Part shown: positions 13,101 to 26,595 of the stretch, piece after piece
Numbering within the stretch: the first letter of the stretch is position 1
Layout: each line of letters begins with the position of its first letter
DNA from: Heteronotia binoei
Taxonomy: Eukaryota
Length of the DNA: 64,000 nucleotides
Assembly (NCBI RefSeq): GCF_032191835.1
Contig: NC_083242.1
Coordinates: 496,001 to 560,000, forward strand
Direction of reading: 5' to 3'
The notes under the pieces: generated by a model
Database searches by the model: none
What the model was told of the DNA's origin: nothing
What the model saw: the letters and a program-made list of their open reading frames with translations, nothing else
Position numbers and translations under genes: made by a program

Positions 13101-16100
13101 CAGCGTGAGAAGAGGAAACCCGGCAGGCCCAGCCACCGCTGCAGGCTGTCCCAGGGAGCCAAAGGGCCTAGCAGCACGAGCTGCGTCTCCTCCTGGGAAT
13201 AAAGGCCACCCCAGACTTTCCTCTGTCAGAGGCAGAGCTGGAACAGAAGCCCCCCCCAACCCCCAAGGCCTCGCTAAGCCCCCTCTGCTCTGCACAGAGC
13301 CCCCCTCCAAGACCAGCCCCCCAACTGCCCCTTTGGCCCTACCTGTTGGCCAGCTGCTGCTCAAAGTCCCCACACTGGCGCAGGAGCTCCCCACAGGCAG
13401 CCATGATACTGGGCGGGGGGGGGGGAGAGGAGGAGAAAAAGCAGCCGTTACTCCCCCCTGCCCCTGCTGGACTCCTGCGTGACGGCAGCACCCCCCCTCC
13501 CCCGGGGCTGCTCACACCCTCCCTCTGGGGCACCCGAGGCAACCTGGCTCTGAGATTCACCCTTGGGAGGGGCCTCTTTGCCCGGAAGAGGCGGGAGAAA
13601 GAGCCCAGCTCTGAGGAGTTCCTGCCTCCCCAGAAACGCGTGGCTTGGCTCGCTTGCTCAGGCAGTGCGCTCTGGCTCTCTGCCACGGGTGGCAATGCTC
13701 ATCTGAATCCCGGAAGGAGGGGAGAGCAGAGAAGGCAACTGGCTGGCGGGCGACACTCTCCTGGGCCAAGAGGACCCAAAGCTCTCACCGGATCGAGCTC
13801 TGGAAAGCGGTCCAGTCTTCCTGCGGAGGGATCTCGTCCAGTTTGCACTTCTTACGGATCGACTGCAGGGCGCTGGCGAAGTCTGAGGCATACCTGCGGG
13901 AGGAGGAGCGGAGCAGAAGGGCGCTGGGAGAAAGGAGAGCCTGTGGCCCAAGAGGTCCAGAAGAAGAGCCTGGCCTTGGGTTGGGGCGGCTCAGTCCTGC
14001 ACCAGTTCATGGCAAAGGCTCTGAGCCCCTCCCCAGAGAGAGCAGGGGGGGGGAAGCTGTGGCTCGGCCACTCTCCAGCCCTTTGCCCAGAAAGCCCAGC
14101 AGATCTCCCCCCTTTGTTCCTTCCGCTTCTAAGGAAGGAGAGGGAGCCCTCCAGGGCCCAGGAGCCCAAGGCCCCAGGGAAGGAAGTCCAGCTTGCCCCC
14201 CCAGGCAAGTCCTGCCCCCCGCCCTGCCCGGGACTTACTTGCCGAAGAGGGCGCGCAGGGCCTTGAGGAGGCCGCCCACCCCTAGCCCGTCGGTCAGCTG
14301 GAGGCAGTTGTCCACCGCCTGGTGGGCCAGGCCAAAGAGCTTGCTCACCGACTGGCACAGCTCCTGGACGCAGTCCAGCACCTCCCCGTGCTCCTGCCCA
14401 GAAGTTACAAGCGCCAGTCAGCCAGAGAGGCCCCTGCGGCCAAACTGCCCGGGGCGGGGGGACAAAGGCCGCTTCACCCCCCCTCCCCCCAAGAAAAGCT
14501 CCAGCTCCCGCCTGTCTCCTCAAACCGGCCAAGTCTGGTCCTTCCGGCACTTGCGAAATCGACCCTGAGACTCTCAGAGTGGCCCTTTGAGCACCTCGCT
14601 TGCCCAACAGCCCGCAGGGGCAAAGGTTAGGGCGCCGGAGGCTGCAACGATGCCCGGAAGGCCCGGCCTACCCAAGCCAGGCTGGTGACTTCTTCCTGTT
14701 CCCAAGCCAGTGCAGCGGATTTCCCCTTTTCCCCGCTCTGAGCTGACCGGGGAGGGAAGCACCTCAAGCTGCATGCCCAAGACCTACTCCCAAGAAGCTC
14801 TCATGAGGCTGGAGACAACCCGCAAAGCCCAGTGGCCGGACGGAGCAGGCCTCGCTTACCAGAGGGACGGCGCTCATCTGGATGAGGAGGTTCTCTTCCT
14901 CCAGGGCCCCGTACTGCAGCTGGAAGGGCTTGTAGGGCCCGTAGACGGCCTCCACCAGCTCTGCCACCTTGGCCGGGTTGCAGTCCCCTGGAGGGCCAAG
15001 AAGAGGAGCTCAGCACCAGGGAAGGGCCCAGGCCGTCTCCTCCGCTCTCGCCCTCGTGGAGTCAGAGCACACACAGAGTGGCCCTTCTCCCGGGCACAGC
15101 AAGATCAAAACACTTAGAACAACAACTACAATGGCACACCCCACTGAAGACGAAGATGATATTGGATTTATAGCCCACCCTCCACTCCGAATCTCAGAAC
15201 CTCAGAGCGGCTCACAATCTCCTTTCCCTTCCTCCCCCACAACAGACACCCTGTGAAGTGGGTGGGGCTGAGAGGACTCTCACAGCAGCTGCCCTTTCAA
15301 GGACAACCTCTGCCAGAGCTCTGGCTGACCCAAGGCCATTCCAGCAGGTGCAAGCGGAGTAGTGGGGAATCCAACCCGGTTCTACCAGATAAGAGAGCTC
15401 TGGCTGACCCAAGGCCATTCCAGCAGCTGCAAGTGGAGGAGTGGGGAATCAAACCCGGTTCTCCCAGATAAGAGAGCTCTGGCTGACCCAAGGCCATTCC
15501 AGCAGCTGCAAGTGGAGGAGTGGGGAATCAAACCCGGTTCTCCCAGATAAGAGAGCTCTGGCTGACCCAAGGCCATTCCAGCAGCTGCAAGTGGAGGAGT
15601 GGGGAATCAAACCCGGTTCTCCCAGATAAGAGAGCTCTGGCTGACCCAAGGCCATTCCAGCAGCTGCAAGTGGAGGAGTGGGGAATCAAACCCGGTTCTC
15701 CCAGATAAGAGAGCTCTGGCTGACCCAAGGCCATTCCAGCAGCTGCAAGTGGAGGAGTGGGGAATCAAACCCGGTTCTCCCAGATAAGAGAGCTCTGGCT
15801 GACCCAAGGCCATTCCAGCAGCTGCAAGTGGAGGAGTGGGGAATCCAACCCGGTTCTCCCAGATAAGAGAGCTCTGGCTGACCCAAGGCCATTCCAGCAG
15901 CTGCAAGAGGAGGAGTGCGGAATCAAACCCGGTTCTCCCAGATAAGAGTCTGCACACTTAACCGCTACACCCAACTGGCTCTGAGTTTCTGGGGTCTGAG
16001 CTATGGCTTTGGTATAGCCCCTCCCCCCAAACCCCCCCCCAGGAGAGACCCCAGCCACATCGTCCTCAAGGGTGATCTGAGCAACTGGCAGGTCCACTCG

Positions 16101-25100: not shown

Positions 25101-26595
25101 ACTCCTCCACTTGCAGCTGCTGGAATGGCCTTGGGTCAGCCATAGCTCTCTTATCTGGGAGAACAAGGTTTGATTCCCCACTCCTCCACTTGCACCTGCT
25201 GGAATGGCCTTGGGTCAGCCATAGCTCTCTTATCTGGGAGAACAAGGTTTGATTCCCCACTCCTCCACTTGCACCTGCTGGAATGGCCTTGGGTCAGCCA
25301 TAGCTCTCTTATCTGGGAGAACAAGGTTTGATTCCCCACTCCTCCACTTGCACCTGCTGGAATGGCCTTGGGTCAGCCAGAGCTCTCTTATCTGGGAGAA
25401 CAAGGTTTGATTCCCCACTCCTCCACTTGCACCTGCTGGAATGGCCTTGGGTCAGCCATAGCTCTCTTATCTGGGAGAACAAGGTTTGATTCCCCACTCC
25501 TCCACTTGCAGCTGCTGGAATGGCCTTGGGTCAGCCAGAGCTCTCTTATCTGGGAGAACCGGGTTTGATTCCCCGCTCCTTCACTTGCAGCTGCTGGAAT
25601 GACCTTGGGTCAGCCATAGCTCTCTTATCTGGGAGAATGGGTTGGATTCCCCACTCCTCCACTTGCAGCTGCTGGAATGGCCTTGGGTCAGCCAGAGCTC
25701 TCTTATCTGGAAGAACCAGGTTGGATTCCCGACTCCTCCACCTGCAGCTGCTGGAATGGCCTTGGGTCAGTCAGAGCTCTGGCAGAGGTTGTCCTCAAAA
25801 GGGCAGCTGCTGGGAGAGAGTTGTGGGGGAGGAAGATAAAGGAGATTGTGAGCCACTCTGAGATTCGAAGTGGAGGGTGGGATATAAATCCAATATCATC
25901 ATCACCTTCTTCTGTAGCAAGGTCGCATTTCCTTGCATGGCTCCACAGGTGAAGAGTGCAGTCACAATTGCAGTGAGCAACAGGGACAGAGAATGCCCCC
26001 CCCACTGCAGCAGCCCCCCCCCCACAAGCACCTGCATGGACTGGGCGGTGTCCTCCTCCAGCCGCTTGATGTCCTCCCTCACCAGCACCATCTGCTCCTT
26101 CAGGAAGCTGGCCTCCTGGCTCAGGGCCTCCACCTCCCTCAGGACCCGAGGCATGTTCTGCAGCGCCTGCCGGCTCGTCTCTGCGGGAAGACAGCAGCCA
26201 TAAGATCCCGCCCCCCAGGCAAAGTTCCACTTCCTGGGAACCACCAGGGGCTGCACCCCCCTCCCACACACACACACACACCACGGGCAGAGTGCCAGAA
26301 GACGGCCAGAGGGAAGCAACTCCACTCGCTGTAGGAGAAGGGCAAGGTGAGAGAAGGCTTTCCTGCCCCCACAGGGACCAGAGAGGAACCCCAAGAATGC
26401 CAGAGGAGGGGGTGGGTTCAGCGGTTCACCTTCCACCGCCTTGTTGACCTCTTGGATGCAGAGCTGCAGCTTCATGACCAGGGTGGCAGCGTGGGCATCC
26501 ACCTTGCCCGGCGCCTCCTGCTGCACAGCCCTGAAGGCCCCGTTCACCCAGGCCTTGACCTCGAAGTCCTCCGCCAGGAACTTGGAGAAATCCAT
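10142..26595 (-). CDS. COG7: Conserved oligomeric Golgi complex subunit 7; 17 coding exons; 1-nt deletion in exon 7 as assembled
   Basis: complement join(26430..26595,26032..26180,23940..24056,23129..23297,21057..21139,20193..20315,16866..17063,14860..14987,14239..14393,13789..13893,13343..13408,12814..12997,12042..12179,11865..11948,11068..11182,10413..10556,10142..10308). Starts [16 protein letters not shown]; contains [68 protein letters not shown]; ends [17 protein letters not shown]. Sum 2291 nt, one short of 764 codons. Confidence 0.96.
15140..15990 (-). mobile_element. Squam3-like SINE with 8x 79-bp internal tandem (COG7 intron 7, sense)
   Basis: Head at ~15985, B-boxes every 79 nt from ~15364 to ~15917, complete L2-like tail ending ~15150. 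Confidence 0.9.
17878..18292 (-). mobile_element. Squam3-like SINE with 5x 79-bp units, 3'-truncated (COG7 intron 6, sense)
   Basis: B-boxes at ~17923, 18001, 18080, 18159, 18238; head with internal deletion at ~18260-18292; no tail. Confidence 0.85.
23639..23668. repeat. (GGCA)n microsatellite; other simple repeats include (CA)n at ~12231, ~24316, ~26266, ~38063 and (GA)n at ~34182
   Basis: Read directly from the sequence. Confidence 0.9.
24722..25915 (+). mobile_element. Squam3-like SINE with 13x 79-bp internal tandem (COG7 coding intron 2, antisense)
   Basis: Head 24722; GATTCC B-box at 24777 + 79n (n=0..12); tail to ~25915. Confidence 0.9.

Follow-up and report, generated by a model that had tools for sequence, protein, structure and literature searches.

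Tandem arrays inside Squam3 SINEs of Heteronotia binoei: copy number made in place, founding duplication most likely carried by one SINE lineage

How does the same internal tandem repeat, cut at the same junction, come to lie in several separately inserted copies of one short interspersed element (SINE)? The question is raised by a 64,000-nt stretch of the Heteronotia binoei genome (contig NC_083242.1, positions 496,001 to 560,000), which contains no N and is called the window throughout this text. It holds five copies of the SINE Squam3, named A to E, and a 79-bp unit is arrayed in four of them. A preliminary description of this DNA had asked whether the arrayed copies resemble SVA, with a composite master element that retrotransposes together with an internal variable number tandem repeat (VNTR), and had named inter-locus conversion and a slippage hotspot as alternatives. 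The analysis reported here shows with high confidence that the copy number of the arrays was made in place. The founding duplication of the unit most likely travels with one SINE lineage, which is marked by a G at unit position 73 (G73); we hold this second view with moderate confidence. The five copies are composed as follows.

532..1277, plus strand: copy A, Squam3 SINE; head to 567, three 79-bp units at 568-804, body at 805-859, array of four 104-bp tail units at 860-1271.
15140..15982, minus strand: copy B, Squam3 SINE; head at 15982-15947, eight 79-bp units at 15946-15315, body and (CTT)n-type tail at 15314-15140.
17877..18290, minus strand: copy C, Squam3 SINE; head with an internal deletion of about 13 nt at 18290-18260, then five units down to 17877.
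24721..25912, plus strand: copy D, Squam3 SINE; head at 24721-24754, thirteen 79-bp units at 24755-25780, body (with a deletion of about 33 bp) and tail at 25781-25912.
31881..32275, plus strand: copy E, Squam3 composite; partial type-1 head at 31881-31902, type-2 head and unit as far as CCATAGC, followed by a type-1 element that begins at GGTTAAG and continues to the tail.

The 79-bp period was detected by Tandem Repeats Finder at 568-804 in copy A (3.0 copies, 92% matches), at 15315-15948 in copy B (8.0 copies, 98% matches), at 17877-18259 in copy C (4.9 copies, 95% matches) and at 24753-25780 in copy D (13.0 copies, 95% matches); for copy C the program also returned a period of 157 bp, equal to two units. 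The units were cut in register into a table and the four array loci were read directly. Together these approaches confirmed that the same unit is present in 3, 8, 5 and 13 copies with an identical junction, apart from single-base exceptions, and that the four insertions lie in both orientations, with A (532) and D (24721) on the plus strand and B (15140) and C (17877) on the minus strand. The preliminary description had placed the arrays between normal heads and, in three copies, normal tails. Copies A, B and D do consist of head, array, body and tail, but the tail of A is itself an array of 104-bp units and both the body of D and the head of C carry the deletions given above. Copy C stops inside its fifth unit and has neither body nor tail.

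The flanks of copies A to E, compared over 600 nt, share no homology. The copies therefore occupy five separate insertion sites and are not duplicates made at the DNA level, which rules out segmental duplication of the array loci. No convincing target-site duplication was found at any of the five copies, the best candidate being 6 bp (CCTGAG) at copy A; Squam3 is stated in the literature to generate such duplications only seldom, so the insertion borders are uninformative. A relaxed search of the window returned no intact one-unit copy of Squam3, only short old fragments. Copy E had been proposed as an internal control, since it uses another junction. Its junction (CCATAGC/GGTTAAGTG, the slash marking the joint) is indeed different, but more than 10 positions distinguish its two units and two head types are present in it, so that it is a composite of two SINE copies rather than a simple product of slippage. 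Partial extra copies of the head, comprising its first 15-22 nt, stand directly upstream of the full head in D (at about 24697-24720) and in E (31881-31902). They could have arisen by template jumping at the 5' end of the RNA or through a duplication of the head unit.

The element corresponds to the consensus sequences Squam3B and sSat3_Gja2 (Gekko japonicus) in the supplement of Vassetzky, Kosushkin and Ryskov (2023; PMC10702118), with which it was compared by eye. The matching parts are the head, the box-B region, the ACCTCACAGGGTGTCTGTTGTGGGG block and the AAATCCAAT...CTTC tail; Squam1 and Squam2 were considered as well and do not match. The element thus shows the composition expected of Squam3, with a tRNA-derived head, a CORE-type body, a 3' region of LINE origin and a (CTT)n-type tail. 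It is about 290-330 nt long; its 79-bp unit begins in the anticodon-loop-like part of the tRNA-derived head, takes in a B-box-like motif and ends in the first part of the body. The Squam3 heads of the window are not called as tRNA by ARAGORN or Rfam. Vassetzky et al. (2023) described SINE-derived satellites (sSat), whose tandem units of 70-290 nt derive from Squam SINEs and occupy tens to thousands of loci. Judged by their sequence, the present arrays belong to this published class and to its sSat3 type; that such a class is known from squamates had been noted by the earlier reader. Both the species and the unit are absent from that listing: four geckos were analysed there, H. binoei not among them. 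Our literature search for a description of the Heteronotia genome or its repeats gave nothing relevant. At 79 bp the unit lies within the size range of sSat3 units (about 70-290 nt, representing only part of the SINE), and similar units are present at many dispersed loci according to the genome-wide counts of units per head given below. The working threshold that Vassetzky et al. (2023) set for sSat3, at least four middle monomers, is reached by copies B (8 units) and D (13 units), whereas C (5 units, 3 of them middle ones) and A (3 units) fall below it.

Whole-genome shotgun (WGS) reads of about 1x coverage were mapped to copy B; they comprise three runs from one sample, possibly that of the assembly itself. 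Reads of all family members land on this copy and the read pile is thus a genome-wide sample of the family, for which variants above a share of about 27% were tabulated. Past the 3' end the read consensus continues as (CTT)n. Measured against the read majority, copy B has edges and a core of different age. Its units 3-7 show no differences from one another and unit 2 departs from them once, whereas 2 changes are seen in the first unit and 5 in the last; these edge changes are rare in the reads genome-wide. The head, the first unit, the last unit and the body with the tail together differ from the read majority at about 18 of 367 nt and, in the tail, by an insertion of 5 nt; the six inner units differ by 1 change in 474 nt (Fisher p = 3e-6 against the edges).

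The array of copy D carries comparable traces. In it the variant CAAGG, which replaces CCGGG, forms a contiguous block over units 5-10, as would be the case in only 8 of 1716 arrangements, and neighbouring units differ on average at 3.2 positions, units seven apart at 5.3. The three units of copy A show 2, 5 and 4 differences from the unit consensus and diverge from each other as much as the rest of element A does, so the array of A is about as old as its insertion. Old edges, a young core and the similarity of neighbours together indicate that the copy numbers 3, 5, 8 and 13 were set at the loci themselves. At least the core of the eight-unit array of B and the six-unit CAAGG block of D were made where they now stand, and the arrival of 8- and 13-unit arrays as such, implied by the comparison with SVA, is not supported. 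The core of B (15394-15867) is also identical to the genome-wide array consensus and holds no private change, while the edges of the same copy are about 5% diverged. Had a resident unit been amplified, a core of this kind would be expected with P ~0.02; the reason may be chance, conversion by an array elsewhere, or recent copying of an arrayed source that is itself older.

The arrays of A, B, C and D share the unit-to-unit junction GAGCTCT/CTTATC, with single-base exceptions such as GCTCG/CTTATC after the first unit of copy D at 24833. The CTCT microhomology that had been noted at this junction is real, since CTCT is found at both parent sites, within GGACTCTTATC in the head and within GAGCTCTGGCAG at the border of unit and body. 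That diagnostic variants recur between loci was confirmed as well: CAAGG is present in the third unit of A and in units 5-10 of D, and the head variant GGTGAAG is common to the same two copies. The last units of B and D both carry G22 (GGTTGGATTCC); otherwise, the first and last units of copies A-D have no variant in common. Genome-wide, T occupies the G22 site in 95-96% of last-unit reads and G22 is found in less than 5%, which rules out G22 as a family-wide signature of the last unit derived from a master element. Strict clustering of units by locus, which would have pointed to expansion after insertion only, was not found (3.82 differences within and 4.29 between loci, permutation p = 0.10), in a comparison of little power given that most units are at the consensus.

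The reads place the four arrays in a genome-wide setting. In run X5 the depth was about 58,000 on the head and 91,000-96,000 on body and tail, as against about 1 on the unique flanks. Summed over the array, the depth corresponds to 2.5-2.6 units per SINE head in all three runs, about 1.2 of which are array-internal (units 2-7), again in all three. If arrays hold seven units on average, as they do here, roughly one copy in six would be arrayed genome-wide (15-20%, a rough estimate). The summed depth at the canonical junctions amounts to about 7 x 10^4, whereas each of the alternative junctions listed for the region is supported by 190-510 reads, less than 1% of the canonical value; these alternatives include the fusion of a unit end with a complete head and a 105-nt unit that contains 26 nt of the body.

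Unit position 73, three bases before the junction, separates the arrays from the bulk of the family. The last-unit pile is anchored by the body and includes every monomer, and T (CCATAGC) is read there in 89-90% of cases. The corresponding share is 77-80% in first-unit reads, which are anchored by the head, and falls to 29-33% in the cleanest inner-unit piles, where the remaining reads have G (CCAGAGC). Arrays are therefore formed preferentially, by a factor of about 20, from the G73 minority. In the window, G73 is present in all four canonical arrays and both units of copy E have T. In G73 units the junction reads AGAGCTCT, a perfect 8-bp palindrome (e.g. at 15394-15401), of which the T of the family majority leaves only AGCT. 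The possibility of a structure-driven duplication hotspot was examined by folding a two-unit stretch as single-stranded DNA; the fold was no better than that of shuffled sequences (z = -0.29) and lends this idea no support.

Random duplication in resident monomers would give about 90% T in inner units, and 29-33% were seen, so that a trait of one lineage is the simplest reading of these shares. The occurrence of one junction in four of the five copies in the window likewise suggests a lineage trait. We consider it moderately probable that the arrays arose in two steps, a duplication that arrives with the SINE lineage being followed by growth of the array in place. In the first step, the 79-bp duplication at the CTCT repeat would come with the insertion instead of being made anew at each locus. 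It could stem from a source gene that already holds two or more units, comparable to rodent B1 with its 29-bp internal duplication, or the reverse transcriptase of a long interspersed element (LINE) could slip back between both CTCT sites while copying the RNA. The second step is shown by the traces described above: unequal exchange or replication slippage between units enlarges or shrinks the array at each locus and leaves a young homogeneous core between old edges. No arrayed element contains a run of four or more T on its sense strand, and an RNA polymerase III (Pol III) transcript could thus span it. This feature, the age of the units in copy A and the partial extra heads at D and E, which resemble template jumps, also fit a duplication carried by the lineage. 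Of the earlier idea of a master element with an expandable array, the expansion in place is thus retained, and the junction and G73 as lineage traits favour arrival with the duplication; the part that finds no support is the arrival of long arrays as a whole.

Several points weigh against an origin of the duplication in one lineage. The read counts reflect the number of units rather than that of loci, which lets long arrays prevail in the shares of G73 and of the junction. All reads come from one animal, and those with multiple mapping positions were placed by a fixed rule, the effect of which is visible as humps at units 2-3 and 6-7. The read table covers variants with a share above about 27%, so that CAAGG and GGTGAAG can be weighed within the window only. 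The palindrome AGAGCTCT could favour duplication in place rather than mark descent. No position-specific variant is common to the first and last units of the four loci, so that a source with distinct units has left no direct trace, and the insertion borders give no help either. Finally, the window also contains arrays derived from the Squam3 tail, from another SINE and from a further retroposon-derived repeat, and four of its five copies are arrayed against the rough genome-wide share of 15-20% (p ~0.007); both observations suggest a regional tendency to duplication at the DNA level.

Taken further, the origin in one lineage leads to a more general proposal, which we put forward as tentative and somewhat short of probable: a Pol III-transcribed SINE lineage may carry a minisatellite derived from itself through retrotransposition, with multi-unit RNAs or slip-back at CTCT seeding thousands of array loci that later grow in place. 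If true, retrotransposition would be the dispersal step that turns a fragment of a SINE into a genome-wide satellite. The study of Vassetzky et al. (2023) leaves unexplained how one type of unit reaches thousands of loci.

The most serious alternative, which we consider unlikely, is that the arrays are purely a product of events after insertion. Each locus would first have held one unit, the same 79-bp duplication would have arisen many times at CTCT (and, in G73 copies, at the AGAGCTCT palindrome) as a hotspot of slippage or break repair, and unequal exchange would have expanded it. This account draws on the demonstrated growth in place, on the other retroposon pieces that form arrays in the window, on the over-representation of arrayed copies there relative to the rough genome-wide share and on the proposal of Vassetzky et al. 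(2023) that a duplication by unequal recombination precedes amplification. However, a direct repeat of 4 nt is only one of many in an element of 330 nt, and yet a single junction exceeds each alternative by more than 100-fold. The arrays are, moreover, strongly enriched for a base that is present in only about 10% of last units, and the dimer of the unit has no unusual single-strand structure, as stated above.

An SVA-like master, in which whole long arrays of, for instance, 8 or 13 units would be transcribed and retrotransposed as one RNA and their structure inherited between loci, appears improbable. The absence of an internal Pol III terminator from the arrayed elements would permit it, and in its favour are two variants that A has in common with D, GGTGAAG in the head and the two-step change CAAGG in the unit, as well as G22 in the last units of both B and D. 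So is the core of B, which lacks private changes despite its diverged edges and would agree with recent copying from an arrayed source of greater age. Yet no two loci have their unit order in common, and G22 and the other edge changes of B are found in less than 5% of last units genome-wide. The contiguous CAAGG block of D is what local duplication predicts. Transcripts of Pol III longer than 1 kb are unusual. In the SVA and LAVA elements of hominoids, conserved arrays of repeat units at both ends of the VNTR are the proof of an inherited array (Lupan et al. 2015; PMC4432496), and arrays of this type are lacking here. Mobilisation of whole long arrays therefore looks unlikely and is unsupported by the present data.

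Inter-locus gene conversion that keeps units alike and spreads variants such as CAAGG between loci is very improbable: although the lack of strict clustering by locus (permutation p = 0.10), the identity of the B core with the genome-wide array consensus, the presence of CAAGG in A and D, which have the same orientation and lie at a distance of 24 kb, and the between-locus homogeneity reported by Vassetzky et al. (2023) speak for it, most of the sharing concerns the consensus state and is uninformative, the junction cannot be created at a monomeric locus by conversion unless it is copied too, and no conversion tract can be delimited with 29 units.

A founding duplication that travels with the G73 lineage thus remains the most likely origin of the arrays. 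Whether the arrays have a role of their own is a separate matter. The motif GGTTTGATTCC, with one mismatch allowed, occurs 32 times in the window against an expectation of 1.3, and 29 of these sites lie within the four arrays. The count of 29 B-box-like motifs given in the preliminary description is therefore correct, but the cluster of TFIIIC sites it envisaged is not upheld: all 32 motifs read GGTTTGATTCC or GGTTGGATTCC (GGTTTGA or GGTTGGA), with T or G in place of the consensus C, and none has a C at the fifth position of the canonical B box GGTTCGANNCC. This C corresponds to the invariant C56 of tRNA. The majority of reads also has T at the fifth position, from which it follows that the whole family was amplified with the non-canonical form. 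A role of the arrays in TFIIIC recruitment is, on the evidence of these motifs, unsupported; weak binding may occur.

Between the arrays, two open reading frames on the minus strand match the Pfam family COG7.

23907..24059, minus strand: COG7 exon; Pfam PF10191, profile positions 105-155, E = 2.3e-14.
21054..21140, minus strand: COG7 exon; Pfam PF10191, profile positions 201-229, E = 5.6e-08, slightly below the gathering score for this fragment.

These matches place copies B, C and D within introns of COG7, where B and C are oriented in sense and D in antisense to the gene. No sign of function was seen, suggesting that the arrays are neutral, length-variable DNA in the introns and flanks of COG7. 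Nothing special follows for the COG7 locus from arrays that are intronic and length-variable and whose B-box-like motifs are non-canonical.

Further repeats were observed in the window. The unit of the tail array of copy A (860-1271, 4 x 104 bp) extends from ACCTCACAGGG to the 3' terminus of the SINE and has the boundaries of sSat3_Gja1a of Gekko japonicus, and copy A accordingly holds two different SINE-derived arrays, one of 79-bp and one of 104-bp units, in a single element. Junctions of the tail-array type are abundant in the reads, with about 10,000 per run (joint from 15256 to 15158, 10 letters between). Upstream of the COG7 exons, positions 27808-29070 are occupied by an array of another tRNA-headed SINE. 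Within it, seven Rfam tRNA matches lie on the minus strand at 27887-29066, spaced by 223-225 nt and then alternately by 163 and 167 nt (a two-unit period of 330 nt). Unlike those of Squam3, the heads in this neighbouring array are recognised as tRNA by Rfam. A further retroposon-derived array at 61476-61926 has periods of 67, 124 and 191 bp. A GC-rich minisatellite of 77 bp at 47507-48163 (8 copies, 95% matches) gave no match to the Squam3 query and is adjoined by short repeats of the GGGCGGGA type at 48521-48561. The best tRNA-like match of the window, at 37158-37230 on the plus strand (Rfam tRNA, 56.9 bits; ARAGORN Pro(GGG)), could be a real tRNA gene or the head of a SINE.

SINE-derived satellites are among the few cases that allow one to watch a dispersed repeat give rise to a tandem repeat family. 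H. binoei is a clean test case for this, with a fixed junction, an adjacent marker base that separates arrays from ordinary copies and all array sizes in SINEs that are otherwise intact. If it is the SINE that carries the first duplication along, retrotransposition seeds satellites; if it does not, a repeat of 4 nt is a remarkably precise duplication hotspot.

Among known systems, the closest are the sSat3 satellites of squamates (Vassetzky et al. 2023). As in the snake satellite sSat3-SRP, the unit originates from inside Squam3, where it covers the 3' part of the tRNA-derived head, box B included, and the beginning of the body. Also shared by sSat3 and the present copies are array lengths from a few units to many, a scatter over a very large number of loci and terminal units that continue into the SINE ends. 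The greater homogeneity reported for longer sSat3 arrays is a further likeness that we draw to the arrays of the window. The gecko unit is nevertheless longer than the snake unit (79 against 67 nt), and reaches about 10 nt further in the 3' direction. It derives from the gecko form of Squam3, whose body contains an additional segment of about 40 nt. The gecko variants in print (Gja1-3, Ppi1-2) are based on different parts of the SINE, and both SINE ends are retained in most copies here, a structure that was described as a minor form in the same study.

The SVA and LAVA elements (Lupan et al. 2015) resemble the arrayed Squam3 copies as non-autonomous retroposons with an internal array of variable copy number that is remodelled at the DNA level via microhomology. 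SVA, however, is composed of unrelated modules and mobilised by LINE-1 as a long transcript, whereas all parts of the present elements come from one tRNA-derived SINE, and conserved, position-specific edge units common to the loci were not seen in copies A-D; on both counts the proposed analogy with SVA is not supported. SINE families with an internal duplication in the source gene, such as rodent B1 with its 29 bp and the short ones cited by Vassetzky et al. (2023), offer a parallel for a fixed junction that is inherited by all copies of a lineage. Their duplications stay at two copies, whereas the Squam3 unit of H. binoei expands in place, to as many as 13 copies in the window.

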